A DNA stretch of 64,000 nt from Epithemia pelagica. Lineage: Eukaryota; Protista; Bacillariophyta. Made by a program: the position numbers and the translations under genes. Below the pieces are notes generated by a model that was given only the letters and a program-made list of their open reading frames with translations, ran no database searches and was not told the origin of the DNA. Shown piece after piece: positions 1 through 40,919 of this stretch (position 1 is its first letter; each line of letters opens with the position of its first letter). Location of the stretch: positions 2,666,001 to 2,730,000 of the forward strand of contig OX337239.1 of NCBI GenBank assembly GCA_946965045.2, in the 5' to 3' direction.

Positions 1-97
1 TGTTTGTGCTTGCGCCAATCTGAGTCGCCATTGTCTCAATATCCTGAAAAACACGATATAATGAAGACGTGGTGACATGCACAATGTGCATCTGTTC

Positions 98-355
98 TCA
101 TTTCTTTAGCAAGGCGTGACAGATGGGCCAAATGTTCAAAAGAGCATGTGTCCATAACGAATGATGGGTTACAACAACAATTCGTCCCACACCCTGACGG
201 ATCATGGAATACATTGTAGCCGCAAGGACAACTGCCTGAAGTTTATTCGATTGATCGTTGTTGCGCATTTTCGTGTGGGGAATTAAAGCCAAGGTGTTTC
301 TCATTGGGCTTGTATTTTTTTCCTTTAGCATAGAGAGAAGATCCTCAGTTGTTTC
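98..355 (-). pseudogene. 3' part of a host ORF interrupted by the copia insertion (unknown product)
   Basis: Removing 356-7151 and one GTTTC copy joins ...LWSVET to TEDLLSMLKEKNTSP...QAVVLAATMYSMIRQGVGRIVVV in frame. This gives an ORF of about 244 aa together with 7152-7633. Confidence 0.75.
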
Positions 356-552
356 TGATAGAATGCAGTGGGTAACGCAAACGGGAAAAGTGAAAGATTA
401 TAAGATCTTACTGTCTATGAGATCCTCGGACGATGTCAGCCCAACTGACTTTCTTGGTTTGGGTCTTTGGTCGTGTCATTGTTGCTTTGTGACTGGTTGT
501 GCGACCACGCCGGGCGACTTCGTCCTTGTCCATCACATTGTCAATTCCAACA
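356..552 (-). repeat. 3' LTR of copia element 1
   Basis: Direct repeat of 6955-7151, TGATAG...CCAACA. The only mismatch is T488 versus C7087, at a CpG. Confidence 0.97.
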
Positions 553-3500: not shown

Positions 3501-6500
3501 CACCATGCGGGTAGCACTATCGACTAGGGTAAGACAGTAGTTAAACCCCCCAGGTGACGTTCCGGAGCCGTAGCCAATATCCATTCCAACAAGGTCCAAC
3601 TTACTCCGCTCTCGGCGACGAGACGGACCACGGCGACGTTGGTCGATCGTAGTAAAATCGCCAACGGTAGGAACGGATTCCTGGGCGTCCACCACCTGGA
3701 CACCGCTACCGACCGCCTGAAGAAGCGTGAAATCGCCAACCGTGCGATTACCGAACAGTCGGTGCAATTCGAACGGCGTGTGGCGACGCTGCTTACCAAT
3801 GCCGGTATCGGCCACATAGCAAGAGGGTAGAGTCGGGGAGGCAGACGGTGAAGACTTGGCTTGGGTTTGAGCACGTGTGGCGACGCGACGACCAATCGCC
3901 CGACAGGCACGACCATAAAGAACGCTGCCATGGCCATCACTATAGGCCAATGTAGGAGTAGCCGAACAGGGACGGATGGGAATGAGCGGATCGGCATCGT
4001 CATCTACCGACACGACGAACGATGGGAACGTGGGGGACATCCCCTGACCATCAGCAAGGAAACTGCAACCGGCACCACGTCGACGGTGAACACGGATGGA
4101 GAGAAGATGGACATCAAGTTGCGGAACATGAAAACAATCAGCCAATCGAACTGAATGTCCCCCCAGGACGAATTGGACTGTGCCTTTGCCAACAATGGGG
4201 ACGCGACGACCATCACCCATTTCCACAAATTGATGGGAGACTGGTTCGTATTCCTCATCCACGAAGAGGGCCCGATCCCAAAACATGTCGGCAGTTGCGC
4301 CGGAATCGGGGCACAACAGAGAACGACGGGGAGAGGGAGAGGACGGGGGAATACTACGGCGACAAACAGAGGACGGAGAGTCGACCGGAAATATGGGTGA
4401 TTCATCTAGTAAGAGATTACTGTCACTACCTCGACTACCAAGTATCCAATGTTCAGCGAAACCATCCGAGCCTTCCGACGGAGCCTCGCTCCAATCATCA
4501 GCATCGTCAAAGTCACTCTGTGGAACAGGGCAGGAGGTGAGGGACAGTACATCACAGGGCAATCTTGAGGGACCCAACAACTTACATGTCGACAAGGCAG
4601 TGTCGCTACCAACCGTGTCCACCACAGGAGCTCGACTGACGGGAGGAGCGGAATCTTGAGCTCGACGACCGGCCACACTGGGAGTCTCGGCACTACCCGA
4701 CGAAGAACGACGACCAGCAGGGAAGGAAGATGGGCGCCCTTCAGGATTCAACACCGTATCCTTGGTGTAGTCGTAGTCAATGGTGAACCCACACTCCTTC
4801 AACAGTGGGCACTTCCAAGTAGGATGAATACCGCGGCCACCTTTCTTGTTCCCCTTTCGGAGAATTTTACACATCAGGCATTTGTACTCCTTATGTTGCT
4901 GTTTCGCTTCGGCCGACGTCAAACTCGGTCCAACGGGCGTAAAATCATCGTCGACATCACTCTCACCAGAGGTCACTCGTCTCCCTTTGATCACCTGGTT
5001 GCTACTGCTTTTACCATCCATGACTTCCATAGTGGACCTGGATTTGTAACAGTGTTCCCGAAACTCCTGATGCATTGAGATAAACAGTTCTTGTGTCGAC
5101 ATGTGGAACAAATCCAGACGATTGCATTTAAACTCTTCTTCTAAGGTACGCATGGCGTGCCCATAAGGCCCCTTAACGACCAAGTAGTAGAATCGTACGC
5201 GAAACTGCAAATCAGTCACTTCATACTTGTGCGTCTGCAATCGTGCCCGAGCTTCCTTGGCTCGACGATAAAAGGTTGTGAGGTCTTCCTTGTTTCGATG
5301 CGAGAGGCGATGCCACGTATCCAGATCGTGAAAGAAGGAACTGGTGGTAGTCGGATAGGCAATCGCACGCAGACGCTCCAGTAACACGATACCATCCCCA
5401 TAAGCGTCCTCAGACTGTAACTCCGACAAGACACCGAGAGCCACGGGATTCCGTTTACCTTGAATGGCGATGACTAAATGATAATGCAGCTGTTGTGAAA
5501 CCAGACGGTCATGCTCGTTGTCAGGGGTAGTAGTGTGACGCGGAATCGTCGACCCATCTTGTAGATGCCAGTGGGGCATGTGTAGGATGTTCCGGACCGC
5601 TTCGTAAAACTGATCAAAGTGTTCGCCTGTAAATGCTGTGGCTGGATATTCCGGGAACCCTTTCTGTTCGCGCCGCAACTTGCCACTTGGGGTTTCGGTA
5701 AAACCACTCCCCCCCAAACCGACAGCACCAAGAGGCCGCGCAGGAGAGGCGGCACCAGGAGCAGCATTGAGAGAACGCACAACGTGAGCCACAGTATCAG
5801 GAGGAACCGAAGCACCGAGGAGAGCGGACTCCAAACGACGAGCAAGAGACGTGGTATCCGAGGGAGCGGGCGAAGCAACGAGGGCAGGGGACGGGGCACC
5901 CGGGGAGAAAGCGGCCACGGGACGCGGCCAAGGACCCTGTGTATATGGGACGGTAGGAAGGGGAGGGAACGGACCCCGTGGCGGACACAAGCGAGGGTCC
6001 CAACCCAAATACCGAACGGCGGCATCATAGGTAGAGGCGCCTGCAAATTCGGGGCTGGACCCACTGAGGGACCGAAAATCGGCAATACGGGCCCACGCGT
6101 CGCCCCAGGAGGTGTAGATTCCGGGATTCCAACCTCTACGGACGGCGTAGAAGTTCTTGTGGGAATGTTGGGTAGACCGGTCAGGTCCTATATACCCTCG
6201 GAGGTAAGGGTGAGCAACGCCGTGGAAGTCCCCACGGACAACCAACTCGGACAAAATCTCGGATGAGGAGGATTGGTAACGGACGTAGACCTCCGCAGCC
6301 CCAAATGTCACAGTAGGAGGAGGCATGGGACCAGTAGGACTCGGTGGGGTAGGAGGAGGACTGAACGACGCCAAAGGCCCAGGAGTAACAATCTCGGTTG
6401 GCACTGGACGACCTTCTAGTAAGCTCCCGCCCGGAGAAAGGTCCGCATCATAAAGAGCTTCTTCTGCCGCTTCAATTGTGTCGGCAACGCTGAGAGAACG

Positions 6501-6884
6501 GGGACACACCGATTGATCACCGCCTTGAATGATGACCTCACGAGTGTAGGGACTGTACGCACTCAACGGGTCGGACGATAAGGAGGCATCTGGATCTGGA
6601 CGTTGGTAACGAGGAGGAGGAGGAGACTCCGTCACTCGAGGAAGGGAAACCACCACTTCGGGAACAATGGCATGAACCATGGTCGGTGGATCAGCTGAGA
6701 CGACTGTGTTGGCCACGTTATGGTTGGTGGACTCAGCATTGGACAGTGGATCATCCAACGAAGGAATGGTGGGGTTGATGTTGAGCTGTTGTAACATACG
6801 GCCAAACGGGGTCCGTAACAGTCTCGGATGGGAGAAGAAGCCTCCAGGAGGATCATCGGCAGATCCACCAGTTGTGGAGGACAT
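408..6884 (-). CDS. Gag-Pol polyprotein (Gag with RNase H1-N/Cauli_VI-like domain, aspartic protease, DDE integrase, RT, RNase H)
   Basis: First ATG at 6884 (MSSTTGG). Protease CPDSGAT; integrase GMDIG...CDFDS...NGLVERAW; RT AKSRIVVLG, GDCKNAF, LYGL, YVDD; RNase H YTDSNW, CEAE, DNKG, NPADLLTK. The stop lies inside the 3' LTR. Confidence 0.95.
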   Translation of the reverse strand: MSSTTGGSADDPPGGFFSHPRLLRTPFGRMLQQLNINPTIPSLDDPLSNAESTNHNVANTVVSADPPTMVHAIVPEVVVSLPRVTESPPPPRYQRPDPDASLSSDPLSAYSPYTREVIIQGGDQSVCPRSLSVADTIEAAEEALYDADLSPGGSLLEGRPVPTEIVTPGPLASFSPPPTPPSPTGPMPPPTVTFGAAEVYVRYQSSSSEILSELVVRGDFHGVAHPYLRGYIGPDRSTQHSHKNFYAVRRGWNPGIYTSWGDAWARIADFRSLSGSSPEFAGASTYDAAVRYLGWDPRLCPPRGPFPPLPTVPYTQGPWPRPVAAFSPGAPSPALVASPAPSDTTSLARRLESALLGASVPPDTVAHVVRSLNAAPGAASPARPLGAVGLGGSGFTETPSGKLRREQKGFPEYPATAFTGEHFDQFYEAVRNILHMPHWHLQDGSTIPRHTTTPDNEHDRLVSQQLHYHLVIAIQGKRNPVALGVLSELQSEDAYGDGIVLLERLRAIAYPTTTSSFFHDLDTWHRLSHRNKEDLTTFYRRAKEARARLQTHKYEVTDLQFRVRFYYLVVKGPYGHAMRTLEEEFKCNRLDLFHMSTQELFISMHQEFREHCYKSRSTMEVMDGKSSSNQVIKGRRVTSGESDVDDDFTPVGPSLTSAEAKQQHKEYKCLMCKILRKGNKKGGRGIHPTWKCPLLKECGFTIDYDYTKDTVLNPEGRPSSFPAGRRSSSGSAETPSVAGRRAQDSAPPVSRAPVVDTVGSDTALSTCKLLGPSRLPCDVLSLTSCPVPQSDFDDADDWSEAPSEGSDGFAEHWILGSRGSDSNLLLDESPIFPVDSPSSVCRRSIPPSSPSPRRSLLCPDSGATADMFWDRALFVDEEYEPVSHQFVEMGDGRRVPIVGKGTVQFVLGGHSVRLADCFHVPQLDVHLLSIRVHRRRGAGCSFLADGQGMSPTFPSFVVSVDDDADPLIPIRPCSATPTLAYSDGHGSVLYGRACRAIGRRVATRAQTQAKSSPSASPTLPSCYVADTGIGKQRRHTPFELHRLFGNRTVGDFTLLQAVGSGVQVVDAQESVPTVGDFTTIDQRRRGPSRRRERSKLDLVGMDIGYGSGTSPGGFNYCLTLVDSATRMVFCYGLQRLTGGDLQDAFWRFLIDAGGIPKTVQCDFDSRFLGGSMAGFLKSLRIVVRSAAPRRQSSNGLVERAWRTGVRMARSFLAEAKLPRSFWYWALRESFHRMNLLPVQTSPSSWTTPLELFYSRKPDYRVLFPFGSIGYFHRPSDGRRSRQSFEAHSFVGIAVGRSDFCNGLVFYNPDLRAFSVSSDYSLDSNRSVQDAFPSQVYDGGLQLSLWARDSETKAIYPPGTPVYWRSPGTHTRHQGDVLQVPTATTATYKIKPTDPASDDPVEISSDSVWGVNDLKLGRPIAESTTASIDAPTTEAQPSDNDPLRPSWLRDGEAVTIQVDEHGYVQGELRLDPFGEWEFVSRDALDNNQRLVLSLSNLPQDYRERLQLGTMIPGWTLSQQKRASGRFVSASGLDCKKAPASLMSLPTLSANDNGIWTGAYGEEHGSLCGMDVFDEIDAATYARYKEAGFTAIPTMNIFTIKPDEMGNPYRAKSRIVVLGNLEERVWTNADRYAPVLQSTSCRLLLSMAVAMGRVAKQGDCKNAFCQPELPEDEIVICQPPKGCPLSKPGTYWRLKKTLYGLRRSPRHWYDKFVEVLMNDLGFERCANDPCVLVGKAREDGPPIYVGVYVDDFIYFSREAESEKWFETALGKILTVDFMGLVTYFLGCRYQWTRTASGGLCLHVSQPGFTEQLLTKFNMDKCTPATSPYRSGLPIDRIPTATTTAENNPLTSSYRSLMGGLTWLSISTRPDIAVAHKLLSRHITNLSPGHMEAAKHVLRYLRGTTENGIAFMENPADNLIHGYISWPNKVPPPDHDGSSTYTDSNWGPQDASRPLPEGEETRTVSDDECKSLQGALLIWSGGPIWWKVEREKRCSRSSCEAEIKSMDLATKEAQHLVYLMNELGVTDTHHPIPLYNDNKGSVDWSGTGAITKRLRHLNMRQVAIRDAIQAREVAVYHIPGNVNPADLLTKEHRDVSHFRELPDILVPELAGVGGVGIDNVMDKDEVARRGRTTSHKATMTRPKTQTKKVSWADIVRGSHRQ
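553..566 (-). promoter_or_regulatory. Polypurine tract
   Basis: The minus strand reads GCTGGAGTGGGGGG immediately before the 3' LTR. Confidence 0.8.
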
Positions 6885-6940
6885 GGTAAAGGAAGGTCTC
6901 CCCGTGGGGGTTACCCAAACGCAAAGCAAGGCACCGCAGT

Positions 6941-6954
6941 TGGGCTCGATAACC
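6941..6954 (-). promoter_or_regulatory. Primer-binding site, half-tRNA type
   Basis: The minus strand reads GGTTATCGAGCCCA directly after the 5' LTR. It resembles the complement of the tRNAiMet anticodon arm (GGTTATGAGCCCA) with one extra C, and has no TGG start. Confidence 0.65.
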
Positions 6955-7151
6955 TGATAGAATGCAGTGGGTAACGCAAACGGGAAAAGTGAAAGATTAT
7001 AAGATCTTACTGTCTATGAGATCCTCGGACGATGTCAGCCCAACTGACTTTCTTGGTTTGGGTCTTTGGTCGTGTCATTGTTGCTTCGTGACTGGTTGTG
7101 CGACCACGCCGGGCGACTTCGTCCTTGTCCATCACATTGTCAATTCCAACA
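6955..7151 (-). repeat. 5' LTR of copia element 1
   Basis: Matches 356-552 at 196/197 positions. Confidence 0.97.
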
Positions 7152-7633
7152 GTTTCTACCGACCACAAAAAGTTTAGCAATATGCTCATGATACGTTCGA
7201 AGCTTTTTGGGTAGTCAGGTGAATGAGCATTAAGCCCTTTGTACCATTTGGACAAGTGTTCAGCACTAAAGTCCAGAAAGTCTTTTGTCATGCGGACATC
7301 CCTTCTATGATTGATACGAACTGCACTAAACACCGCACTCTCCAAATTGGAAAGTGACCCATTTGTAACATCCATGCGTTCGAATCGATCAACAGATTGC
7401 CACCAAGAGGCTGCGTAGGCATCAGAAATGGCTACAAAATTCTTGGAGTCAAAATATTCAATCGGTCGTTCAAGTGAAGTCGACATGGGCTCAATCAGTT
7501 GGGTTACATTTTGGGGTGGCCCCAAGTCATATGTATGGAACATCATCAAAAACTTATATTGGGCCACAATGAAACTCATCACCATGAATAGGGACATGCC
7601 CTCACGAATGCCAATTCGGCACGCAGAGTACAT
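7152..7633 (-). pseudogene. 5' part of the host ORF interrupted by the copia insertion
   Basis: The ORF from ATG 7633 runs into the LTR. It rejoins 350-98 in frame when the element is removed. Confidence 0.7.
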
Positions 7634-7831
7634 TGTGCTGGTATGATGGTATGACGGAAATGACAGAAAGCTCTCTATTCACTGCTTGTTTCATGGCAAT
7701 GAAAAAATGAGCTGTTCCCTCTTTGCGAAAACAGAAAACAGACACCTTTTGGCCGTTGTCGCGCGTCCCGCAATGACTTTAGTCGTCAGGGCGTGAAATG
7801 TGAAACCTCTTGGGCATGAGGGAGGATAATT

Positions 7832-8014
7832 TGAATTAACACTGACGGTCAGACGCAAAATAAGGCCAAACTATCAGAAATTATGGCAACTAAACTAGGG
7901 GGTGCTGTCCCCTAAGGAAAATATGATATGAAAATTATGAGGGAGTCAACCCAACTAGAGGACATCCGGGTCACTACCGTTTGCTTTGCGCAAACCCATA
8001 GGGGAATTTCTTCA
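7832..8014 (-). repeat. Diverged 3' LTR of a family related to the 240-bp CoDi LTR, with adjacent PPT remnant
   Basis: Starts TGAATTAACACTGACGGTCAGACGC and contains AAACTATCAGAAATTATGGCAACTAAACTAGGGG, as in 33737-33976. Ends TTCA, followed by GTCCCC like the other 3' LTRs. Confidence 0.7.
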
Positions 8015-8615
8015 GTCCCCTCAACATAGCATCCATAGCCCACATAGCTTGCTAGGATTGCTAGGTTGTTGCGAAATTTCGGGCAGGATCACATTTTCCG
8101 GAAAAAATCCAAAATCCGTGAGAAAATTTTGATCGGTCGCATGTTACACTGCACATCCAATAACAGCCTCAAGTACTGCGTGGTAACTGGTAACAGATGC
8201 TGTTAGATTTCTTGCTGCGTATTACAAGCTGAGTTCAGGGAGTATGTTCCTGACGTAGACCCCTCGTAGATTTAGTACCATTTAGTATAATCCTTAATAG
8301 CGTTCGGCCTTACTAGTGAATGAAAGTGTCCGACTCGAGACTTCCCAGTGTCTTAAGAAAATAAGTTATTTGTCTTGGTGTGTTGTGTGACAGCTTCCGA
8401 ACGCTAGAATTTCGTCCAAAATGATGAAGAAAACGGTTGTTGTCTAACGACCATGGTGGACGGCCATCCCAACCGTTCGAGATGTTGCCGAGCTGCATCC
8501 GGATGCTTTAGGGTTTACTTGAACCACCCCCAATGGGGCAACATCTCAAACGGTTGGCATCATCCTCAATAATTCGATCATCCAACTCATCCCACGCAAC
8601 ACGGTCTACAACAGG

Positions 8616-11600
8616 ATGGAACGAAATTTTTCTGGGAAAGATATTCTTGACGTCTTTAAGACGCGATGCACCCGATCCTCGTTCGGATTCTGCAACAAGT
8701 GGATCCAAGACACCGAGATTGTAGGATACCTGAGAACTTGGTTGCCAGGGCTGTCGACAATCAGATTGAATTCTCTTTTCTCTAGAGACATTGTCCTTAA
8801 ACCCATTTTCAAAAATGAGGTGTCGGAACCAAACAAGTTTGGCTGGTACCGCCACAAAATCACAATCAATAAACAAAGATACACATTCTTGTATATAAGC
8901 TCCGACACAACAAAACTGCCAGTGATGTTGAACGATCACCAAGAATGGCTGGAGGCTGCAGCCGAGAATGTGATTCGGCGGTCGGGACGAGAGAAGCCAA
9001 CGAAGCGAAGGAACGAAGACTCACCAGGGGTACATGAAGGCACGGCAACTGTATCCAAGCAAGCAAGGAACACTACAACACCACCAGCAATGAAGAGCAC
9101 TGCAACGCAGCAACATGGTCAACCGCCACAAATTGGAGACAGCCCTACCGAAATGCAAACGTCACCACCTCACGACAACACAAATCAGGTGCTTGTTGGA
9201 GCAATCCAACATCCTGAATTGGCCACAGACGAAATCGGCCATGACCATCCACAGAGTTTGCCGATTGGTTTTTCAGTTTTCGAGTGTGAGATGATCCAAG
9301 GTTTATCGCAACAAATGGAAAGTGCCTATTTTGATGAGCCAAGGAACCGTAGGCTCTTTGCCGGCAAATGTGATTCTCCAGATCGTCAAAACGAAATCTT
9401 GAGCGATGGATAGAAACCCTTGAAAGGGCCATTTCCAACGTGGAGGCACTTCCGAATGTGGTTAACAAGGGAGACATCTTCCCCCTCAACCAGGAACAGC
9501 AACAGAGGGTACTGCTCAAGGCAACGTATTTACAACTTTCTTATAAGATAGCGTTGCTTGATATGCCACACGGTCGTACATGGCTGAACTGCATAAGCGA
9601 AGCCATTAGCAAAATGGAACAGATTTATGGTGAAAAAGTAAAAAAAAACATCCCAAGACCATTGCTCGTTTTCACAGGTACTTTCGGGAAAACGACAGTT
9701 TCCCTCATCCCAACTACCACGTTCATATTGGGAAAGAGCCATCGCCCGTCTTATTCGTTCACATACCTGAAGCAAAGGTAAAGTTTGAATGCTGGGCAAA
9801 GGAAAACCTGAGCACTCTTACAACAGAGTCTGCTCTAATGTACCTGAGGACAACATTGCTTCCGGATATGCATACCATGATCGTACAAGAGTGCATGGAT
9901 ACGAATACAACGCCAGTATCGTACGAGGACTTCTTGGCATCGATGAAGCTTTCCACCATTTCGCAAAGCACAGCATGGCGATGTATTGCTGCTGCAGGGT
10001 TCGTGTTCAAGGAACACACAAAAACATACTTCACTGATCGACACGAAAATGCTGAGAATGTTGCCCACAGAGCTGCTTTTGTCAAGAAGTACTTTAAGTG
10101 GGAAGAGCTGTCGTATCGGTGGGTGCAGCTCCCTACCGAGGATGCAATCAAACTTGAAAACGAAGGGAATGCGGGCAAGGAGAAGCTCTTGCCAAACAGC
10201 TTTGTATTTGAGTACACTGATGTAACAACATGCAAGCAGATGCGGGAGTACCATGTTGATGCCTTCCCAAGCGAATTTGAACGGTACATCAAACCAGAAA
10301 ACACAATTCACAATGGAAACTTGTCACACAGGTTTCCCTCCGACCGCAAACCTGTCATCCTCATCGGCCAGGACGAATCGATCTACAAGCAGTTTTCCTT
10401 CTCGTCTAAGGCATGATACACTAAAGATGGTGCAACTAAAATGCTGCCAAAGGATGATGGACATGGGATGATGATCAGCGCTTTTGTAAGCCGATCATGG
10501 GGCTTCCTTATGAACGGAAACCCGTTGCTTGCTGCAAGTCTATTTCGGATTAATGAACTCCGTCTCCATGCGACACACAACAAATACGTCTCTACCGAGG
10601 CTGCAGTGAACCTCAATGGTCACACTGCCAAGACTCCAATTACCAATGCCCAACCGTTCACTCGCTTTTTTGAATACGGAGCAGATAAAGAGGGATATTG
10701 GAATTATGAATACATGGCCTTGCAGTTGGAGGATATTGTCGATTGCCTCGTGGTCATGTTCCCCGCCCATGACTTTGTCTTTTTGTTCGACCAAAGCAGT
10801 GGTCATGGAAAACAACAATCCGATGGGTTAAATGCTCTGAACATGAATAACGACTGGGGAGGAGCTGTTCCCAGCATGCGGGACACACAAATTATTGATC
10901 AAGCTTGCCTTGGCCCGTACAACCATGACAACAAACTACGAGTTGGTGACGTACAACACCTCGTCTATCAGGAGAACGATCGTGGTCCAGTTGCTAAAAA
11001 AGGCCATCGTCTCAATGACGCGCAGCGTGTCGCATCGAAGAATACACACCGAACTGGTAGAAAGAAAAAGCGCAACCTCACAAAGAAGGAGCTCATGGCA
11101 AAACTTGTCCGGGTCATGGGACCTGGAATGCAATGTTCATTTCAATCGAAAAATGCTGGTGAACTACAGGACCTTTGTAAACGCTCCAACATTGCAACGG
11201 TGATTGAAGATGATGTGATCGAGGAAGGCTGGATGAATGCTGCAAAAGGGCTCTTTCAAGTGTTATGGGAGCGGGGGTGGATAGACCCTAACAACATGAT
11301 CAAGTACGTCAAGACAACCAGAGATGCATGGTTGGAAGCGGATAAGAAGACTGTGAAAGAGGCCTATCAGGCGGACTACAAAAAGTACTCTATGGTTCAT
11401 CTGATGAGCGAATGCTCCGATTTCAAGAACGAAAAATCTGCAATGGAGAAGCTGGCGGAAGACTTGTCTGAACGACATCGTTGCAGGATCGAGATTCTCG
11501 TATCGACCAAGTATCACTGTGAAATGGCCGGTGAGGGGATCGAGTATGGCTGGGGTTACTCAAAAAAAGTCTTTCGTGCTTTCTCACTGAATGAGAAGAA

Positions 11601-11883
11601 AGACAAAGCTGCCTTTTTACGATGTTTGACAGCGAGCCTGAAGAAAACAACACCCGAAATCATGCGGAAAATGTCAGCAAAGGCACGTCGCTATATGCTC
11701 GCGTACTTGTTATACGATCAAAATTCCAACAACAGAGACTATGCAGCTGCGGGCCTCTCGTATACCGAAATTGAAAAGATGTCAAAAGCAATCAAGTGTC
11801 ACCGATCCGCTTTCGACCAAGATCATGGCTTCATCTCACGTCTCTGGAGAGAAACGCAAGGATCTGGTGCAGTAGAAACCTGA
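8616..11883 (+). pseudogene. Large IS630/Tc1-like DDE transposase, disrupted
   Basis: Motifs IGQDES (D), FLFDQSSGH (D), STKYHCEMAGEGIE (equivalent to PxLNPIE) and KGLFQVLWERGW. Broken by a frame change near 9375-9413, a frameshift at the A9 run 9640-9648, and an in-frame TGA at 10414-10416 (Trp expected). Confidence 0.8.
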
Positions 11884-12295
11884 TCTAATCTCCATTTATC
11901 ATCAAAATGCATGTAACTTAACTATTTATAACAGCAATCCATTTTATTGAATGTATTTCTTGTCAGTTATTGGTATCAATGATCACTTCCGTGTTGCGTG
12001 CTCGTGTTGCGTGTTGGATTATCAGTTTATAAGTACCTCGAAAATGTGAGAGAGCGAGAAAATGGACGATTTTCGGAGCAGACCTCGCGCGAAACACGCC
12101 TCCCTCTCCGAAAACGCGCACGCATCGCAAAACTGGCACGCAAATCCTTTAGTAACTCAGCCCACATACCAAAACTTTACCGTTTTTTAGTAAGTGAGCT
12201 CAAGATTTTTTTTTTGGAATGTGAACTGAGGGCTGAGGAGAATGCTGCGTTTCGTGTTTCTTGTGTTTCGTGTTTCGAGTTTTTGCGTTTCGACC

Positions 12296-15181
12296 ATGGG
12301 GAAACCAAGCCCTAAGAAACAGTATTCAAAAGCAGGCGCTCAAAAACGAGACAGCATGAGTGACAAAGGAAATCTTGACGCTCTTATACTTGCAATAGAT
12401 GCAGCGGAAGAGCAGTCAGCCAAAGCAGCAGCGGCGCCCAAAGCAGCAGCAGCCGCAGCACCCGAAGCAGCAGCAACAGACGAAGCGACAACAACAAAGC
12501 ACCATCGGTTTCTTTCGGATCAAGACTTTGCCGAAGTGAAGGATAAAAAGCTTGCAGATGTTCGGCGTGGCCATCCAGAGAAGGACCACAGCAAACAGTA
12601 TTCGGAAACTCAAATGCGGCAGCTCCTCACCGATACGCGCACAGCGGACTACAAGAAAGGCGTCGAGGAAGTGGAGAAACTCCCTTCTCGTTCTGGACGG
12701 GATCCAATCAGGACTTTCACCGAAGGCCTCAAGACGCTCTCCAAGATCAAAGACAGTGCTGTACTTGCCTGTGCTATGGGAGAGTATGTCTCACGGAAGA
12801 TTTCAGCCACTTTTTCGGTCCAAGAAGCTCCAATTCGGAAGCCCGGTTCAGGCTTGCAAAAGGGGAAGATTGTGCCACTTTCGGGTGGAATGGGTCTCCC
12901 TGTCAAGAAGAACAGAAAACATACCTTCCCGATCGGCAAGCATGTCGGTTACACATTTGCGAACAATCCGGTAGTCAAGATCTACCTTGGAAAAGTGCTT
13001 CTGTTTGAGGTGAAGGAGTCAAAACTCCCAGGCGCCGGGTTTGGCGTTTTTGCAGTTCGGACAATCAAAGATGGTGAAGTGATTGGCGCGTACACGGGAA
13101 ACGACGTCACGTCTCGGACAGTTGTACCCAACGAGTACGCGATTCAGTTCGGACGTGACAATCGAAGGCTTCAAGCAGACAACAACGATCACTTTGGCAT
13201 GGGGCTGCACTTAATCAACGACCACCTACACCATCGGTACGGTACAGACAATCCACCGGATGAATCGGATGATCAATACAACGTGAGAATCATGCCGAAT
13301 CTTCTAGTCAAGGCAATCAAGCCGATCGAAAAGGGCAACGAGCTGTCTTTGTTTTATAACCTTTCGGACGAATCGCCGACGTCCTCCGAACAGGTTATCC
13401 GACCGTCGACGAGAGGTGACGACGACGAAGACGAGGGAAAGAAACGCGGTCGACCCAGTGATGAAAATGAAGACGACGAGAAAAAAACAAAGAAGGCTTT
13501 CGTTACCTCTTCTACTACTGTTTTCCGCCCAGTTGCTGCTGTTGCTCGTCCTCCTGCTCTTCCTTCTCCGCCTCCTCCGCAAGACGTTTCTGGGCACTAC
13601 AATTCGCCCCCTCAGCTGCCACCACATCATCCTCCGCCGTATCATCCTCATCCTCCGCCGTATTATGATCCACCGCATCATCCTCATCCTCCGCCATATT
13701 ATGATCCACCGCATCGTCATCATCCTCCTTCGTATCATTCTCCGCCGCATCATCATCATCATCCTCCTTCGTATCATCCTCCGCCGTATCATCATCATCC
13801 TCCTTCGTATCATCCTCCGCCGCATCATCCTCCGCCGCCGCATCATCCTCAGCCGCATTACCATGGGCATCCCCCGTCCTATATTCAACCCCATTATGGA
13901 GGAGGTTACCAGGGGGCTCTGCCTTTATCGCAGCAACAACAACGCACGACCCAGCCGGTCGTAGGTTCACCGGAGCGTCCGAGCAATCCCGTCCCACCTG
14001 CAGCACAAGCTCAACCCGCCTCTCGACCCGATCGCTCCCTTTCTGGAATGTTAGTACGAGTAATTGCCTTGCCAGAATTTTCAGAAAGTGACACCACGGA
14101 TGACAATTCTTTTGATCAGGAGATGTCGGATGACAATTCTTTTGCTCCGGAGATGAATGCGATCGACGAGTTAATGCAGGAGGGTGAATGGCAAAAGCAA
14201 CAGATGTTGCAAAATAGAGAATTGCGCAAGAAGTATTTCAAATCGCTATACGATAGTGAAAACAAAATCTATCGAGGCTGTTTTTTTACAACGCCGCCAG
14301 ACCTCCTCCAGTTGTTGGAGCAAGTGTGGAAAGGCAAACACCTGAACAGTAAAGGAAAGGGCACCTTTTTCAAATCTGTTCAAGACTACACCCCAAATTT
14401 GTTGATGGCGATGATGGAACATGAGGGCATGATGGCCAACACTCGGTACTTCAACGACTGCGACCCAGAACATGTCCAAAAAGTCACAACAGATTTCAAG
14501 CAATTTCTTGCCTCAGCTCTCCATGGAATGAACTACGCAAAAGATGAATCATTTGCGGACCAAATGAGCATTCACCTTTCGCTTATGAAGACCACTCGGG
14601 AAGAAGTGCAAGAACCTCACATCGACTTCTTGTTCCCGGCCGTAACAGGAAACATGTCCGAGAGTCCAAAAACGCCATCCGGGAAGCAACAAAAAAGCAA
14701 AAGGATGACTCGGCAATCGTTCTCAGATCTACCACTCCGGGAACGCATCCCCTTCATTGTTTTTATGCCCCTGACGGAGGAGGGTATGTCCATTGAATTG
14801 TGGAGCTACCGTGCTGAGAAGCACGAGAACTATACCCATGAGTTGGGTAACGTGGTACAAATCCCGTACGGCAAGTTTCTCCTCGTTCGAGGGGATACTG
14901 TCCATGCTGGTGGCTTTAAGACTGGAGAGCTGGGAAATCCACGTGCACATTTTTACGTGTACCAAGGAAAAGATGGGACCGTCCACGATCCCATGCCAAA
15001 GAACAGCTACAATCTACCTTCTGGACAAAGGCTTTCAGAGTGCTACTTCCATCAAAAGGACATTCCTGGTGATCGCCCACGTGGGATCATTCGGGTTAAC
15101 CTTACGCTCGATGGCCATCGCGTTGCCGTCCAGGGTGATTATCGTAGAGTGCTTCCGGCTACGAAAAAACCTCGTATTTAG
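12296..15181 (+). CDS. Cargo: SET-domain + Pro/His/Tyr-rich linker + C-terminal 2OG-Fe(II) dioxygenase-like fusion protein (about 960 aa, intact)
   Basis: SET at about 13000-13360: SKLPGAGFGVFAVRTIKDGEVIGAYTG...HLINDH...AIKPIEKGNELSLFYN. Dioxygenase at about 14560-14960: QEPHID...FMPLTEEG...VRGDTVHAGG...NPRAHFY (HxD...H...R). The ORF track starts at 12242; the second ATG at 12296 is also plausible. Confidence 0.75.
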   Translation: MGKPSPKKQYSKAGAQKRDSMSDKGNLDALILAIDAAEEQSAKAAAAPKAAAAAAPEAAATDEATTTKHHRFLSDQDFAEVKDKKLADVRRGHPEKDHSKQYSETQMRQLLTDTRTADYKKGVEEVEKLPSRSGRDPIRTFTEGLKTLSKIKDSAVLACAMGEYVSRKISATFSVQEAPIRKPGSGLQKGKIVPLSGGMGLPVKKNRKHTFPIGKHVGYTFANNPVVKIYLGKVLLFEVKESKLPGAGFGVFAVRTIKDGEVIGAYTGNDVTSRTVVPNEYAIQFGRDNRRLQADNNDHFGMGLHLINDHLHHRYGTDNPPDESDDQYNVRIMPNLLVKAIKPIEKGNELSLFYNLSDESPTSSEQVIRPSTRGDDDEDEGKKRGRPSDENEDDEKKTKKAFVTSSTTVFRPVAAVARPPALPSPPPPQDVSGHYNSPPQLPPHHPPPYHPHPPPYYDPPHHPHPPPYYDPPHRHHPPSYHSPPHHHHHPPSYHPPPYHHHPPSYHPPPHHPPPPHHPQPHYHGHPPSYIQPHYGGGYQGALPLSQQQQRTTQPVVGSPERPSNPVPPAAQAQPASRPDRSLSGMLVRVIALPEFSESDTTDDNSFDQEMSDDNSFAPEMNAIDELMQEGEWQKQQMLQNRELRKKYFKSLYDSENKIYRGCFFTTPPDLLQLLEQVWKGKHLNSKGKGTFFKSVQDYTPNLLMAMMEHEGMMANTRYFNDCDPEHVQKVTTDFKQFLASALHGMNYAKDESFADQMSIHLSLMKTTREEVQEPHIDFLFPAVTGNMSESPKTPSGKQQKSKRMTRQSFSDLPLRERIPFIVFMPLTEEGMSIELWSYRAEKHENYTHELGNVVQIPYGKFLLVRGDTVHAGGFKTGELGNPRAHFYVYQGKDGTVHDPMPKNSYNLPSGQRLSECYFHQKDIPGDRPRGIIRVNLTLDGHRVAVQGDYRRVLPATKKPRI
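13600..13880 (+). repeat. Coding low-complexity repeat (CATCCTCCGCCG-like units; HPPPY/HHHPPSY)
   Basis: Visible tandem degenerate repeats inside the SET-2OG ORF. Confidence 0.9.
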
Positions 15182-15932
15182 ATCGCGAACAAAGAAGCCG
15201 ATCAAACTTAGATCTTTCCTTGTGGTGAAAGTGTGTTATTGTTGAAAAAGAATACCATGGTACGTTGAGTTGCAGTATGACATTAAGATTTACTAGTTTA
15301 TTCCTTCATATTATACTTTAGTACATTGTCGTGTTGTGTCGAAAACGCAAAATATGAGATAAGAATCATAGCTCGTCTGGGACCAATCACAAACTCCCTC
15401 GTACATCCATACGAGGCGTGCCCGCAAACCGGGACCCAACTACCGACACTGGCAAGCTGGATAACGACGATGACGATGATGACGAAGAGGACAAACAGGA
15501 TGAGCGATGATAGCTACAACAAGGACGACTACAATACAACGACGACAATAATAGCCACGACAATGACGAGGACTTGGACGACGACAATGATGATAATCAC
15601 AACAAGAATGACTGTAGAAGCACTACCATGATGACAAATCGATTCATATTTAGTGATTAAGGATACCTAAAACGTCCATCAGTAGATATCTAGTACGCCT
15701 CGTCCTCATGATCCAAGTAATCGGGACCAAAAAGCCCGTTTTGCTGCATACCGATGAAGTCTTCTTGGGTCTCGAGAAATCCATCATCGGCATACGAATC
15801 AATGGATGTCCGGTATGCACGGGAAGGATTGCTAAAGAAAAAGGAGGAGACGACGGGATGTTTTCTCCCAATGCCAGCGACTCATTCAAAGTCTGGCGAG
15901 GGTCTGTCGCTCCACTTTCCTTCACCTGTTCC

Positions 15933-16595
15933 TCAGCAATCCGACGCTGGAAAGCATGCTTCTGGGAGGGGGTCAGTGCGAAAGCTCGAGACGCCACCTT
16001 CGGGGAAGAAGTTACTTTCTTCGGGGTCACATAAGACTCTGGAGTCTTGTTCTCGACGTCGTCCTCCTTCTTGATCTCCTTCTCGGGCTTGCTGTCGGGC
16101 TTGTTGTCGGGCTTGCTGTTGGGTTTGGTGTCTGTGGCAGCAGAGGGCGCGTCGTGAGAAAGGGAGACTCAAAACCAACAATGAACAATCAAACTTACCT
16201 TCTTTGCCGACAGCCTCGATCGCAAGGAGCTCGGCCGCGATATCCGACAGGTTAGCGCATTCGACGTCCTTGTTGCTGACGAAGAACACTGGGATACCAT
16301 CTTCATCCCCAATGGTGAGTTGCCACTGTTTTGCGCGCTCGTGCCACGACGAAGGACCCTCAAGGTTGAAGGTCACATGCTTCTTTGTCGAAGCGGGAGA
16401 CTTTGTCGTCGTCGTCTTCTTCTTCTTCGACGTTTTGTTGTCCACGGCCGTCTTTGTCTTCATTTTCTTGTTTGCCTTGTTTCCCTTGTTTCCCTTGTCG
16501 GAGGGAAATGCGGTTGTGGAGGGAGCTGCGGCGGAGTCCTCCTGCTCCTTCTTCGCAGACTCAGCTCGTTTGGTAGCACTACGCGTCTGGCGCAT
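15933..16595 (-). CDS. Cargo ORF of unknown function (Lys/Thr-rich N-terminus), possibly continuing into 15650-16030
   Basis: 220-aa ATG-initiated ORF inside the TIRs; no recognised domain. Confidence 0.4.
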   Translation of the reverse strand: MRQTRSATKRAESAKKEQEDSAAAPSTTAFPSDKGNKGNKANKKMKTKTAVDNKTSKKKKTTTTKSPASTKKHVTFNLEGPSSWHERAKQWQLTIGDEDGIPVFFVSNKDVECANLSDIAAELLAIEAVGKEGKFDCSLLVLSLPFSRRALCCHRHQTQQQARQQARQQAREGDQEGGRRREQDSRVLCDPEESNFFPEGGVSSFRTDPLPEACFPASDC

Positions 16596-16747
16596 CGTTG
16601 GGATTCGTTCGTTTGATTGTTGTGTTTGTTTGTTTGATTGTTGCCCGCTCTCCGTTCTTGTGTCTTCTAGGGAATCCCCCCGCGCTCATTCGTGAACAAT
16701 ATCGGCGCGCGGCACAAAATCAACTTGCAGCATGAAGCAACTTCCGA

Positions 16748-17320
16748 ATGACCCGCCGTGCAATGGAACAATCAAACAGAGACGACAGGAAGAGGCAAGG
16801 AAGAAGAAACAAGATGACCAACATGAGGACGAAGTTCGAGTTCAACGAAGAGGATGGCCGTGAGGGTGGTGCTGGTCTCCCGTTGAAGTCGTGCTTTTAT
16901 GCCAGCGATGTTTGCGCGCTCATCGGGCCCATGTCGAGAAACAAGGACACTGGCCACAACATCGTCGACCGTGGCCATCTGCTTGTGCAGCGGGAGCTTG
17001 CGACCGACTACCTACGGATTGCAGTCTTTGACCGGGATGCAACAAGCGAGCATGAGGAACCAGCGTTGGTTGTTCCAGTTGGGTTCATTGCTCTGTCGCA
17101 CCTGGACCAGGTCTCTGGAAAGACGAGCAAGAACGGACCTCCCATGGGACGCATCCGCCTCTACACACGCTGCTCCATCAACCCTAAAGCCTGCATGGAA
17201 CCCCAGGTCGTTACAATCTACATGGGCAGAAAGGATATGGATCGCTTCAACATTTCCCTTGGTGCGATGATGCTCAAGCACCCGCTTCAAAATCTCTTCT
17301 TTAATCATCAACAAGCCTAG
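16748..17320 (+). CDS. Cargo ORF of unknown function (190 aa)
   Basis: ATG-initiated ORF with globular-looking composition inside the TIRs, divergent from 15933-16595. Confidence 0.45.
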   Translation: MTRRAMEQSNRDDRKRQGRRNKMTNMRTKFEFNEEDGREGGAGLPLKSCFYASDVCALIGPMSRNKDTGHNIVDRGHLLVQRELATDYLRIAVFDRDATSEHEEPALVVPVGFIALSHLDQVSGKTSKNGPPMGRIRLYTRCSINPKACMEPQVVTIYMGRKDMDRFNISLGAMMLKHPLQNLFFNHQQA

Positions 17321-17950
17321 ATAGTGAACAATGTAGCAGCGTTTTATGATTATCATTTGAGTAGGATCTTCATTCTCTATGAATACGATCTAATTCTATA
17401 GTTGTGTTACGTTTACCGTACAATACATTGCGTTCAGGTACGGCTGTGTGAGTCACAACAACGAAAAGAACATCAATCTTTGTTGTGAACGACGCAACTT
17501 CTAGTCTAAGTTCCATATATCTAACGAGAAGAATATCAATTTTTGACGTGAACAACGCTACAAGTGTTCATAGTCTTTGTTCTATCTTCTATCATTCGAT
17601 TCTACAATAGAGGTGCATTGGTTGCACCAAGTTTTGCCGTTAGTCGCCGTAGTAAATCGCGCGGCGACCACCTTCAACTAGATAAAACGACACCTACAAA
17701 ACGAATGCAGCACCGACATCGTTCTCCATGCTCAACCCATGAATGGAGAAGAGGTTCAGAGCATGGGATCATGGAGCCGTCTCCTATTTGGCAAGAGATC
17801 GGTCAAAAGGACCGTTCACCATGGTCAATTTTTGGTAGAACGGTAGAGGCATAAAAAGAAGGGCTATATTAAGGGGATGGCTCGCGCGGATTACGTAGAT
17901 TTCCTACTGGAGCGCTACGTCAGGAACATTCTGTCTGAACTCAGCTTGTA

Positions 17951-19840
17951 TGGATTACACTCATGTTATCTCCATAAATGCGAAACGTGGTGCCGGTATA
18001 GACAAACAGTCTAGAACTGGTAAGGCAAAGGTAGGAGTGCCATTTTCGGTGAGTGTTGCTACCCGTCTTAATCCAGGGGCCAAGGGGTTGAGCAAGTCGA
18101 CGAGTCGGACGACCACCAGAAGCAAAAAGACAGTCCAAGAAGCGGCGCCAAGAATTCCACGCTTTGATACTGGGACGTTCTTGATAAGGGTTCAAGTCTC
18201 GCAAAGAAGATGTAGTAGATTGAATACCCTGGTAACTCTCATTAGTAATCGTCGTCCCGTTGCAGGTAGAGGCGGCAAGCATTAATCATGAGTAACTCTG
18301 TGTCGGATTCGGTGAAGGAAAGAGCGTGATCCATGATGAAGGAGTCGTTAATACGCTGAAGGGATGGAATGAAGGTTTGTTCCAGTTCAATCCGACATTG
18401 AATAGACGACAAGTATTGGCGAACTTGTGGAAGCCACTGCATGGGTACCAAATGCGGCAATGGGATTATCACATTGTCCAATATAGAAAAACTAGTGCCT
18501 GCGAGACACTGACCCCACGAAATCATGATGTGTGCTAATTGACGGTGTATGCCTTCTGAGCGTAAGCATGCGAGAAACATATAGACCTGAGAAACGCCTC
18601 GTTCCGTAGAAAGTGCGCGCAGCCCAATCCCACCATAAGCTGATGAACCATACACCACTGCGTTGGGGGTACATCTGTTGTAGCCGGCTTTAGGAAGCAG
18701 GACCTTTTTGAACTGTCGCTGTAGTGCGTTGCAGTGCCGATCAGAGAGGCAAGACGACGGCATCGGGTACGTAATACTAGGGAGGTATACGGCGTGGTAA
18801 TAGGCCCACGCGTCCATGCGGGTGAACGGACTGCGGGCCATCACCTGCGTATGTGTTGTATTTTTCTTCAGCATGGCCTGAAATAAGCTGCGGTCGGTCG
18901 AGGACGGTGCCTTTTGGACGCCAAGGGTTTTGTGGCTTTCATATGCAGACAATTGCCTTAGGGGGCAAGGTGGCTCATGCGGATGAAACTGGATAGTAAT
19001 TTGAGGACCAACTCGGCCACTGTTGAGGTAAGGAGTCCCATCAACTGTGAACGAGAAGTAGAGAAAGTGGTAGGAACACTTTGTCGTCTCGAGAGCTCCA
19101 CCTGAGGTACGGAGGATATCATGCCATCGTTGAGCGTCAGACTGTGCGCGATTGATGTAATGTTCCATTGATGCTTGGCGTGGGAGGTCAAAATCGTTGA
19201 CGCTCCCGCTTGTATCGTCGACAAAACCCACCATAAAAATTCGTGCTTGCACTGTGCCATCCGGTGATTGGAAGGTCGCTCCATTAGCTTTCTCGTCATA
19301 AGCGTCAAACAATATTGTGCTTATGACGCACCAGATTGCTGGAGAGTTCCCGGCACCTTGGCCGGAGCCGTAAATAGGAAAGATTCAACAATGCTTGTAG
19401 GATCGATCAGAGACACCGAGTTGTGTCTTCAGATAATATTTCGCGTCTTCTAAAGTCTTGGCATTAATGAAAACAATCGATCGATGTTGTCCAAAAGAGC
19501 GAGAAGCCAAACTGCCAAACGACATGACAATCCTGTCATAACACGCCGTGGCATCGTAGTCGAGATGAACCAATGGACGACGGCTTGCGCGGCAAATTTC
19601 ATATTGAAATTCTTCAATCAGAGTAGGTAAAATTGCATCTTTTCCGGGGACAGCGCCGAATTGGCCTGGATGAAGAAGTTGATTGTTTGAACCGTTTTGA
19701 ATCAACTGAGGCCACTTGATAGCTAAGATTAGATTGTAATCTTGCTCATACAAGTGTATCACTCGTAACCGGTGGATGCGATGATTGTTAAGTTCTTTCA
19801 AAATCATAACGTTGACGATGCTTTTCCATCGCTCCATGCA
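17951..19840 (-). mobile_element. 5'-truncated non-LTR retrotransposon (LINE) RT fragment, frameshifted
   Basis: RLRVIHLYEQDYNLIL, GQFG, LDYDATACYDRI, GFVDD and SYESHKTLGV in ORFs 19385-19837, 18242-19312 and 17941-18282. Cut at 17950 by the mariner-like element. Confidence 0.85.
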
Positions 19841-20029
19841 GTACTACAAAAATGGCCGGGACCAATCGGCTAAGTAATCCAGAAAAATCGCCAGCCCGCA
19901 TCGTACCGCCCCCGGTCAAGAAGGGACCGACGGACGAACGAGGAACGGACATTGCACCCAGGGTCTGGAATTCAAAAAGTGGGACTTTAATGACTTAAGG
20001 GAATGTAACTTAAATTTAGCTTGAATTAA

Positions 20030-20290
20030 GCCATTCAATTGAAATCCTCCTCCTTTACTTTCATTGAATTTCACAATCCACTCAACTCAATACCGATTTT
20101 TTCTTGGATTCACTATTCCGATTCAAGTCTCATCATCTCAGACGGGGAATGTCAATTCCCTAATTCAATTCCCAATTCACTAAAATAGACACTTCCCAAT
20201 TCCATTCAATTCACTTTATCAGACGATATCAATTCCCAATCCAATCCAATTCCTTCTTACTCACTACAAGAATTTGAGAATCCAATCAAT
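20030..20290. repeat. Left subterminal array of CAATTC/CCAAT motifs of the hAT
   Basis: Many short repeats, mirrored in inverted orientation at 26620-26830. This is typical of hAT transposase-binding arrays (inference). Confidence 0.6.
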
Positions 20291-20562
20291 TTTCTCCTAC
20301 GCACAGATGGAATTACCATTCTCCCCCCAATGTGTCATGTGAATTACGTTTCTATACAATATCACACAGTGACCCTACCTTCAACCGCCTCATCTTTGTG
20401 ACTTGTGACACTCTCTTACCTCTCACCTCTACCGTCCATCCACCAATCCTTCAACAGTTCATTGTCTGTTGCAGCTTGCAACACATGTTGTCTGGCTTGA
20501 TTGTGCGTCTTAATCATCTTCAAAGCCCAGCATCCTTGTCCACCCTGTCTGGATCTACCATC

Positions 20563-23500: not shown

Positions 23501-24327
23501 ACAACGGCAGTGGCGAAGATAATGAAGAACAAAATGAAGCTGTTGAGGAACATGAGCAGGGAACCGATGAAGTCTCGGTATGGGGTTCCATTGCTGAAGG
23601 GACCACTTAAGGTCATATGAAACGTCTGAAAACCATTTTGAAGGGTGTAAAAGATATGCAGAAGCACCACAAGGCCCGGGAACAAATTGAACTTGATGAA
23701 GACGAAGGGAACAATGGGATTGTTGGTTCAGAATACGAATACAAATGCAGTGATTCTAATCTGGATTTGGTACAAAAATTCGATGACGTAGTGCTCATTG
23801 ATATAGTGGACGAAGGGGACAAGGAACAAATGGAATGCATGGGTCGTCTTGGGAAAGACAAGGACCCATTTCAGTCAGATAGTGATGCTTGCATCATTGA
23901 GGCGGTCAAACTACAACAAATGAACTTGATGGCTGGTTCTAGTATTTCTGCATCTTCAAATCGAACAATGAATCCCACTACATCGACGACAGATCAAGGC
24001 AACAGTACCAGTGCAAGTGTTCAAGGAAGTGTGACAGGAATCGTTTCGACGACAACTCCTGCTACACACAGTACCACACCAACAACCCAAAGATCCACCA
24101 CCTCATCAAAAAGGAAGGCAACAACTCAAACGAGTGCATCTTCCAAAAGAGTGCGCCAACAATCCATTCAAGAATCGGCATCTCGAACAAAGTCCAAGTC
24201 CAAATCGTCGAGAGCAAAGAAACCACCTCCTGCAGAACACATCGGAGAGCAGCAAGAAGAACAACGACAACGACAACGATGGACAAGTCCGCGACGCCGC
24301 ACCAATAACAGTAATGAAGACCACTGA
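20563..24327 (+). pseudogene. hAT transposase (BED-like Zn finger, DDE core, dimerisation region), disrupted
   Basis: CPIC...SNVSQHMDSFH (BED-like); CHDIWQ; DNTNSA; CDMHRAEL; FDVLQWWQ...PSTNAFQERIFS. Frameshift at the A9 run near 21165-21173, a second frameshift near 22290, and an in-frame TAA at 23608-23610 before 23617-24327. Confidence 0.85.
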
Positions 24328-40726: not shown

Positions 40727-40919
40727 CGAGTATGACGGTGCTGTGAGGTAAGAAAATCAGTGGTCGTAAACGATGAAAAATGATAGAAAAAATATGGGGA
40801 TTTTGTTTTAATTTGATATGCCGGCGAACAACAAATCAAAACATGACGACGTTTCAATAATTTTCAACAAATCAGCGCAAAGTTTTGATTTGTCGTTTGC
40901 GTCGAAATCTCGGGTAACA

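Follow-up and report, generated by a model that had tools for sequence, protein, structure and literature searches.

The 64,000-nucleotide stretch of Epithemia pelagica DNA considered here (the window; GenBank assembly GCA_946965045.2, contig OX337239.1, positions 2,666,001 to 2,730,000 of the forward strand) contains, at window positions 8225–17948, what is very probably a recently inactivated member of a multi-copy family of cut-and-paste DNA transposons with several genes. The window copy itself is an ordinary decayed member of its family. An intact master form exists, and it encodes a 1088-amino acid (aa) transposase, a 967-aa protein that joins a SET domain to a dioxygenase-like domain (the SET-dioxygenase protein), and a further protein encoded by open reading frame (ORF) 4. 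The transposase probably represents a long, divergent Tc1-like lineage of the IS630/Tc1/mariner group and not mariner in the narrow sense. From sequence comparison, SET and ORF4 appear to be ancestral genes of the element clade, as opposed to host genes or a recent capture, and only the fusion of the dioxygenase part to SET appears to be lineage-specific. The features of the element, in window coordinates (those of domains within ORFs being calculated from residue positions), are as follows.

8223–8224: TA at the left end, putative target-site duplication
8225–8258 (+): left terminal inverted repeat, 34 bp (imperfect continuation to 8269), identical to the left end of the intact paralogue L004
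8466–8560: subterminal hairpin upstream of the transposase start, with 24-nt arms (8466–8489 and 8537–8560) that are 92% complementary
8616–11883 (+): transposase pseudogene (1088 aa when intact), delimited by alignment to relatives and to L004
12242–15181 (+): open accessory gene of 979 codons, with a SET domain, a Pro/His-rich linker, and a dioxygenase-like domain
13037–13360 (+): SET domain, aa 266–373 of the ORF (Pfam PF00856, 29.0 bits, cut-off 22.4)
13308–15476 (+): putative recombinant module, 75–89% identical to L004 (elsewhere 98–100%)
14220–15060 (+): Fe(II)/2-oxoglutarate-dioxygenase-like domain, with invariant HxD (14618–14626), H (14903–14905), and R (14942–14944)
15933–16595 (−): ORF3, 220 aa, Lys-rich, of uncertain coding status (dN/dS, the ratio of nonsynonymous to synonymous substitution rates, of 0.5–0.9, and stops in the paralogue L002)
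16748–17320 (+): ORF4, 190 aa, conserved element gene (homologue in subfamily B, dN/dS 0.26)
17915–17948 (−): right terminal inverted repeat, 34 bp, matching the right end of L004 exactly
17949–17950: TA at the right end

The structural outline given by the initial annotation, namely a giant 9.7-kb element with 34-bp terminal inverted repeats bracketed by TA, a transposase with two frame breaks and one nonsense codon, an uninterrupted cargo ORF of about 2.9 kb, and two further ORFs, is borne out in each of these particulars. End to end the element measures 9,724 bp (9,728 bp with both TAs), and its inverted ends pair at 31 of 34 positions with TA outside each. Both ends match a 34-nt pattern with 3 free positions that occurs just twice in the 64-kb window and not at all in 100 shuffles. 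The imperfect inverted repeat reaches 47 nt at 83% (8223–8269 and 17904–17950), taking in the TA on each side. Full-length paralogues in other flanking DNA terminate at precisely these bases, and TA lies outside both ends, in unrelated flanks, in all 6 complete insertions (the window copy, L004, L002, L005, L006, and L007) as well as at the left ends of L001 and L003. Ends across the family are 31–36 bp long with termini conserved between subfamilies, which are presumably recognized by the element's own transposase, and the terminal CAAGCTG(A/G)(G/T)TTCA is common to the window copy, L001, L002, and subfamily B. The exact end sequence was absent from the metagenome contigs scanned.

Loci L001 to L004 are paralogues from one assembly (ENA ERZ21939226) found by look-up of the closest relatives. 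L004 carries a full copy (5985–15711) that is 93% identical to the window element overall and 98–100% identical outside one segment, with identical ends, TA flanks, and different flanking DNA. Its ORFs for the transposase (1088 aa), cargo (967 aa), and ORF4 (190 aa) are uninterrupted. L002 holds a full copy (9654–19494) that is 70–78% identical and has related ends (TACTAGCTGGTTTCAG... / ...CTGAAACCAGCTTGTA) with TA flanks, in which neither large gene is intact. The L001 copy begins at the base where the window element begins, is cut off on its 3′ side past the position matching window 16689, and is bordered on both sides by Copia-type genes; its transposase is broken and its cargo ORF is open. 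The intact 1088-aa transposase (P0253) occurs unchanged on 5 contigs (n = 43 for its 90% cluster), and the cargo cluster comprises 14 distinct sequences, 9 of them 948–970 aa in length. The remaining locus, L003 (1–18625, contig ctg1231l), is a threefold tandem array with a period of 5,689 bp, built from a chimeric, rearranged unit that joins the left end and an internally deleted transposase (window 8223–9461 joined to 10375–11076, protein P0004) to a 723-aa WW-domain ORF and that has no right end.

A second group of copies in the same assembly as L004, subfamily B, has a 1049-aa transposase 39% identical to the window type. Three 6.97-kb copies are 99.5–99.9% identical to one another, with 31-bp ends (CAAGCTGGTTCACG...), TA flanks, and unrelated flanking DNA, and their gene order is that of the window element: transposase, SET protein, minus-strand Lys-rich ORFs, and ORF4. 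The SET proteins of subfamily B are 387–408 aa long (Pfam SET 26.2 and 25.7 bits, against the same cut-off of 22.4) and are 30% identical to the window SET region (E 2e-18), while a 179-aa ORF, unchanged on 14 contigs, is 40% identical to the window ORF4 (E 2e-43). ORF3 is less well matched between the subfamilies, with a similarity of just E 0.006. In a third lineage from another assembly, L009, whose transposase piece is 62% identical, a SET gene again lies downstream of the transposase. Distant metagenome relatives with recognizable inverted ends measure 3.4–4.5 kb, with one of 7.1 kb, and end in TA-CAGCTG or TA-CAAGCT; tblastn found neither SET nor ORF4 in them. The accessory genes thus set one clade apart in a family whose other elements are simple. 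Among the metagenome loci L012–L091, most contigs with relatives are 3.3–4.3 kb, approximately a whole simple element or its transcript.

A single gene accounts for the four ORF pieces on the plus strand from 8616 to 11883. Relatives align to frame 3 (8610–9380), then frame 2 (9383–9649), then frame 1 (9643–11880), and the orthologous transposase ORF of L004 (6377–9643) is intact. Compared with it, the window copy lacks 1 nt at 9380/9381 (GG>G), carries 2 extra nt in a run of A (9640–9649, A7>A9), and has a TGG>TGA change at 10414–10416, the sole in-frame stop of frame 1, where relatives have W. Apart from the two indels there are only 28 substitutions in 3,266 positions, of which one is disabling along with both indels, and with so few differences the lesions must be recent. 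Both indels sit in short repeats, a GG dinucleotide and the A7/A9 homopolymer, and may themselves be assembly errors. That the copy is nearly functional and its breaks are all such errors we consider very unlikely, since the TGG>TGA change is unrelated to homopolymers and alone truncates the protein ahead of the second catalytic D, and a 2-nt homopolymer error would be uncommon in contigs of such quality. The initial annotation had also proposed mobilization in trans, and this is plausible because copies whose transposase is intact have the very same end sequences as the window copy.

The accessory gene begins, in other copies, at the second ATG (12296), which is probably the true start. A search with the whole cargo protein gave 1 match and was swamped by low-complexity words. 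Its SET region has weak PDB matches to PR/SET domains and EZH2, and the three SET lineages share invariant L-F, G-x-F-A, Y-x-G, H..ND, and EL...Y motifs, with an acidic tail following. The C-terminal domain of about 320 residues looks like a dioxygenase. It has no Pfam match, a search of 5.8 billion proteins yielded just four homologues, of which two (P0238 and P0239) are standalone, and in an alignment of 6 sequences down to 32% identity H173, D175, H268, R281, and H283 are invariant, which gives the iron/2-oxoglutarate signature of HxD, a distal His, and an Arg 13 residues on. A Foldseek search of the PDB with an AlphaFold2 (AF2) model of this domain, whose predicted local distance difference test score (pLDDT) is 52.6, returned a list in which nearly all matches are Fe(II)/2-oxoglutarate dioxygenases (E 5e-3 to 3e-2, probability up to 0.98); they include FtmOx1, AndA, SptF, and prolyl hydroxylases. 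ORF4 has no match in Pfam or PDB.

The occurrence of SET and ORF4 alongside transposases that are just 39% identical indicates that these accessory genes belong to the element and not to the host, so the word "cargo" in the initial annotation, if taken to mean a captured passenger, is not supported. Recent Pack-type capture of a host gene by a single element could draw on the restriction of the dioxygenase module to the window-type lineage and on the standalone homologues P0238 and P0239 elsewhere. It is nonetheless highly improbable, given that three transposase lineages, at 39–62% identity, all have a SET gene downstream, that the SET proteins themselves are 30–36% identical between lineages, and that ORF4 is conserved likewise. 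Pack-type elements, with cargo that is recent, restricted to a lineage, and of host origin, differ in this respect from the present one, in which SET and ORF4 are common to transposase lineages at 39% identity.

The transposase belongs to a large family without a Pfam model. Searches used the broken window gene in pieces or its intact paralogue in L004. A 480-aa piece matches 62 proteins, the only named ones coming from the diatom Fragilaria crotonensis, and a profile of 19 relatives recovered 12,053 clusters (50% identity) at E ≤ 1e-3 among 1.84 billion representatives. Lengths in the family range from 750 to 1100 residues. D586, D725, and E969 (L004 numbering) show complete or almost complete conservation across 48 relatives, at spacings of 139 (D586–D725) and about 244 (D725–E969) residues. 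The second D and the E are separated by 34–41 residues in classical IS630/Tc1/mariner transposases, and the spacing found here lies far outside that DD(34–41)D/E range. The AF2 model of a relative, P0007 (pLDDT 76), has a strand-strand-strand-helix-strand order that fits an RNase-H-like core, with strand 1 bearing the first D and strand 4 ending in the second, followed by an inserted domain, strand 5, and the E; the stretch inserted between strands 4 and 5 is about 220–245 residues long. A Pfam scan placed a SAP motif in 3 of 48 family proteins, and the one located falls in the inserted domain.

What points toward Tc1 is a set of convergent, individually modest signals: the TA flanks, weak matches to helix-turn-helix and IS630 models, and a fold match in BFVD. 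The weak matches are to HTH_33 in 3 of 48 relatives and to the NCBIfam model transpos_IS630 in 2 of 48 (E 0.021), the only families to recur. With Foldseek, BFVD yielded A0A3G5AK55, an 805-aa Sylvanvirus protein (E 1.2e-12, probability 1.00, 634 columns). By eye, the HCE-MAGEG-IE..W motif resembles the Tc1 "D/E-L-N-P-I-E..W" block. No Pfam transposase family was found on any ORF of the element or in 58 relatives, and the absence of DDE_Tnp_4, Plant_tran, and MULE matches in Pfam leaves the transposase without a PIF/Harbinger or MULE signal. Sequence searches of the PDB with the 480-aa piece and with the profile found no match, nor did tblastn of the intact transposase against plasmids, and the viral contigs searched for relatives contained none. 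Because the classical spacing, size, and sequence models are not those of this protein, we place it as probably divergent Tc1-like. The mariner/IS630 label of the initial annotation thus survives as the best placement, on the strength of the TA flanks in 6 of 6 insertions, the Foldseek match, and the weak HTH_33 and IS630 matches, and gives way where it would imply a Pfam model or a classical D–E spacing.

A number of observations weigh against this interpretation of the element and its proteins. Flank-to-flank BLAST among the recovered loci found no contiguous empty site, and the TA may therefore be either a duplication or the outermost bases of the ends; a look-up of a flanking host protein for an empty site gave the same contig only, and the duplication around L007 misses the insertion point. 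The window copy and L004 are taken to come from the same genome or species on the strength of their 98–100% identity over most of the element. In the SET domain the motif is ND where NH is canonical, a His-to-Asp change in all three lineages, with the Asn and Tyr kept (assigned by eye), and the AF2 model of the dioxygenase-like domain is poor. As for the transposase, Pfam DDE_3, DDE_1, and Transposase_1, which cover Tc1/mariner, pogo, and IS630, were unmatched at E ≤ 1–5 in 58 family members. A PDB fold search with the whole 798-aa model gave nothing significant (probability 0.20 for Mos1), and the name of A0A3G5AK55, "Tc1-like transposase DDE domain-containing protein," comes from automatic annotation and is unverified.

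These blanks in the Pfam models and the PDB fold search also favor a different placement, outside Tc1/mariner/IS630 altogether, in a separate DDE superfamily that happens to use TA. The long interval between the second D and the E, the protein length, and the very large size of the family speak in the same direction, as do negative profile comparisons with a neighboring pogo-type (DDE_1) ORF and with a neighboring ORF that has Tc3-type helix-turn-helix matches. Set against this are the strength and extent of the match to a protein named as Tc1-like, the fact that HTH_33 and IS630 alone recur among the weak matches, and the TA flanks seen throughout. A separate superfamily is therefore a possibility to be taken seriously, though a clearly less probable one than the divergent Tc1-like lineage that we prefer.

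An intact cargo beside a damaged transposase had led the initial annotation to suggest selection on the cargo, and this is not supported. With three lesions in the 3,268-bp transposase and none in the 2,940-bp cargo, the probability of such a distribution at equal rates is about 0.15, and family-wide the two genes are intact in similar proportions, so the asymmetry is no evidence for selection on the cargo. dN/dS was estimated by the Nei-Gojobori method in the L004 reading frame, with bootstrap intervals. For the transposase it is 0.28–0.37, with intervals well below 1 (synonymous divergence, dS, of 0.37 against L001 and 0.87 against L002), and for ORF4 it is 0.26 against L002 (confidence interval [CI] 0.16–0.38). 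In the SET part it is 0.57–0.84, with intervals reaching 1, and in the dioxygenase part 0.48–0.76, where the value of 0.48 (CI 0.32–0.67) is that between two module types. This last value, together with the combination of a broken transposase and an open cargo ORF in both the window copy and L001, is what might be expected if the cargo were kept by selection, for host or element benefit, while the transposase decays. We judge that scenario unlikely: besides the chance probability of the lesion pattern, both genes are intact in L004 and both broken in L002, the full-length fraction across the family is similar for cargo and transposase sequences, and the SET ratio is higher than the ratio of about 0.3 in the transposase. 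Long-term constraint on SET and ORF4 is evident at the sequence level from their retention across deeply diverged subfamilies.

Identity along the element is uneven. The module at 13308–15476, in which the window copy and L004 diverge, spans the linker and dioxygenase segment, and here L004 equals L001 at 99–100%. The first 400 bp of the window element are 93% identical to L004. The 5′ part of the SET gene (12110–13307) is 91–98% identical among all copies, L002 included, despite which the L002 transposase and ORF4 are just 60–80% identical; synonymous divergence between L004 and L002 is 0.12 in SET versus 0.87–0.90 in the flanking genes. The simplest explanation is that modules have been exchanged between copies by recombination or gene conversion, which would be expected from template-directed repair after excision.

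Several noncoding features accompany the genes. The hairpin at 8466–8560 is retained in the 70–78% identical copy L002, and a subterminal inverted repeat containing GACCATGGTG lies near both ends (8449–8478 and 17797–17826); the hairpin and these repeats may be transposase-binding or regulatory sites. The interval that separates the transposase stop from the SET start contains a hairpin of 19–21 nt (CTCAGCCCA.ATACCAAAA / TTTTGG.ATGTGGGCTGAG). Three copies retain it (L004 9916–9989, L001 11921–11996, and L002 13654–13730), and in the window (12157–12235) its right arm is disrupted. In metagenome contigs that carry distant relatives (L014, L021, L041, L078, L025, and L040), the inverted repeat extends 1–5 nt past the TA (for example, CGG-TA...TA-CCG and ACAAC-TA...TA-GTTGT). 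In those lineages the target may be a palindrome centered on TA, or the actual ends of the element may be situated beyond it.

Transposable elements are abundant in the window. It contains three pol ORFs of Copia type (RVT_2, rve) and one ORF carrying a hAT dimerization domain, at 408–6929 (−), 40808–44113 (−), 53022–55112 (−), and 22201–23610 (+), and a Copia polyprotein lies about 1.3 kb from the element. Other transposon genes lie near family members at L004 17052–18482 (−), L008 12618–14849 (−), and L011 1378–2184 and 17578–19543; they comprise a 476-aa DUF7769/helix-turn-helix protein with a weak Tc3-type helix-turn-helix, a Plavaka-type transposase, and pogo-type DDE_1 and Harbinger DDE_Tnp_4 fragments. 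At L007, a segmental duplication of about 5.6 kb (1–5660 and 16882–21917; 94–98% identical, with a TLD-domain gene) flanks the subfamily B insertion and 4 kb of unique DNA.

Tc1/mariner is the textbook minimal transposon, with one gene of about 340 codons for the transposase and two ends in 1.3–2.5 kb. The present element resembles IS630/Tc1/mariner in its terminal inverted repeats, the TA at both junctions, the weak IS630-type N-terminal helix-turn-helix, the predicted placement of D...D...E in an RNase-H-like core, and the fold match to a protein named Tc1-like DDE. It differs in having a transposase of 750–1100 aa in place of about 340, a D–E spacing of about 244 versus 34–41 residues, no match to the Pfam catalytic models, and up to three accessory genes in an element of 9.7 kb (6.97 kb in subfamily B and 3.4–4.5 kb in cargo-free relatives). 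A SET domain is also associated with a mariner-type transposase in SETMAR (Metnase), a primate host fusion gene that arose by exon capture of a dead mariner, whereas here SET is a separate gene inside the mobile element.

Closer parallels for the cargo come from other superfamilies. In Phytophthora, HarbingerS and MuDR families include a gene for a SET histone methyltransferase (cited in PMC12730594), and like the present element they are stramenopile DNA transposons with SET as an element gene, presumably acting on chromatin. The diatom element is set apart by the lack of a DDE_Tnp_4 or MULE signal, the fusion of SET to a 2-oxoglutarate-dioxygenase-like domain, and ORF4. Fungal DNA transposons (KDZ and others) encode TET/JBP dioxygenases that have been proposed to counter epigenetic silencing (PMC12730594). 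A transposon-borne Fe(II)/2-oxoglutarate dioxygenase, here a predicted dioxygenase-like domain, is the point of likeness; host and transposase type differ, and the domain here is not recognizably TET/JBP, its nearest folds being of the FtmOx1, AndA, and prolyl-hydroxylase types. In Ectocarpus, giant KDZ, EnSpm, and Sola-1 transposons of 15–30 kb carry transcribed accessory genes, and many have pseudogenized transposases and are presumed to be moved in trans (PMC12477816). They share with the present family the combination of large stramenopile DNA transposons, accessory genes, and dead transposases, and differ in belonging to other superfamilies and in their size of 15–30 kb, against 7–10 kb and a Tc1-like transposase here.

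The element may operate as follows. The transposase would combine a winged-helix DNA-binding part with an RNase-H-like D...D...E core in which some 245 inserted residues separate the second D from the E. The enzyme would bind the conserved CAAGCTG..TTCA termini, excise the element, and insert it at TA, and the window copy would be mobile only with transposase supplied in trans from a copy such as L004. By analogy with the systems above, the SET-dioxygenase protein most likely modifies chromatin or another protein target in the element's favor, for example by countering silencing, and copies would exchange modules through recombination or gene conversion. A broader picture, which we offer tentatively as a whole, is that of a diatom clade of very long Tc1-like transposons with a long-carried chromatin toolkit used to escape or shape host silencing. 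The toolkit would consist of ORF4 and a SET methyltransferase, the latter fused in one lineage to an Fe(II)/2-oxoglutarate dioxygenase, so that a writer might be paired with an eraser or hydroxylase, and its modules would be swapped by recombination; the transposase itself could stand for a deep branch of IS630/Tc1/mariner that has not been described before, or for its sister superfamily, and counts more than 12,000 clusters in environmental data.

Transposon-borne SET genes and dioxygenases are each already known in other superfamilies. In the literature we found no report of SET and a dioxygenase on one element or fused to each other, of either with a transposase of this type, or of such genes on transposons in diatoms; what is new here is the carrier, with its very long Tc1-like transposase, the SET-dioxygenase fusion accompanied by ORF4, and the host group. 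The result is a Tc1-like lineage with a transposase three times the usual length, one clade of which adds three genes including a SET-dioxygenase fusion. Since identical intact copies exist, the system is probably active and testable, and the questions that it raises concern the effect of the SET-dioxygenase protein on histone marks and silencing at the element's own copies and the role of ORF4. For annotation, a family of 12,053 clusters without a Pfam model will be labeled "hypothetical" in diatom and metagenome annotations.

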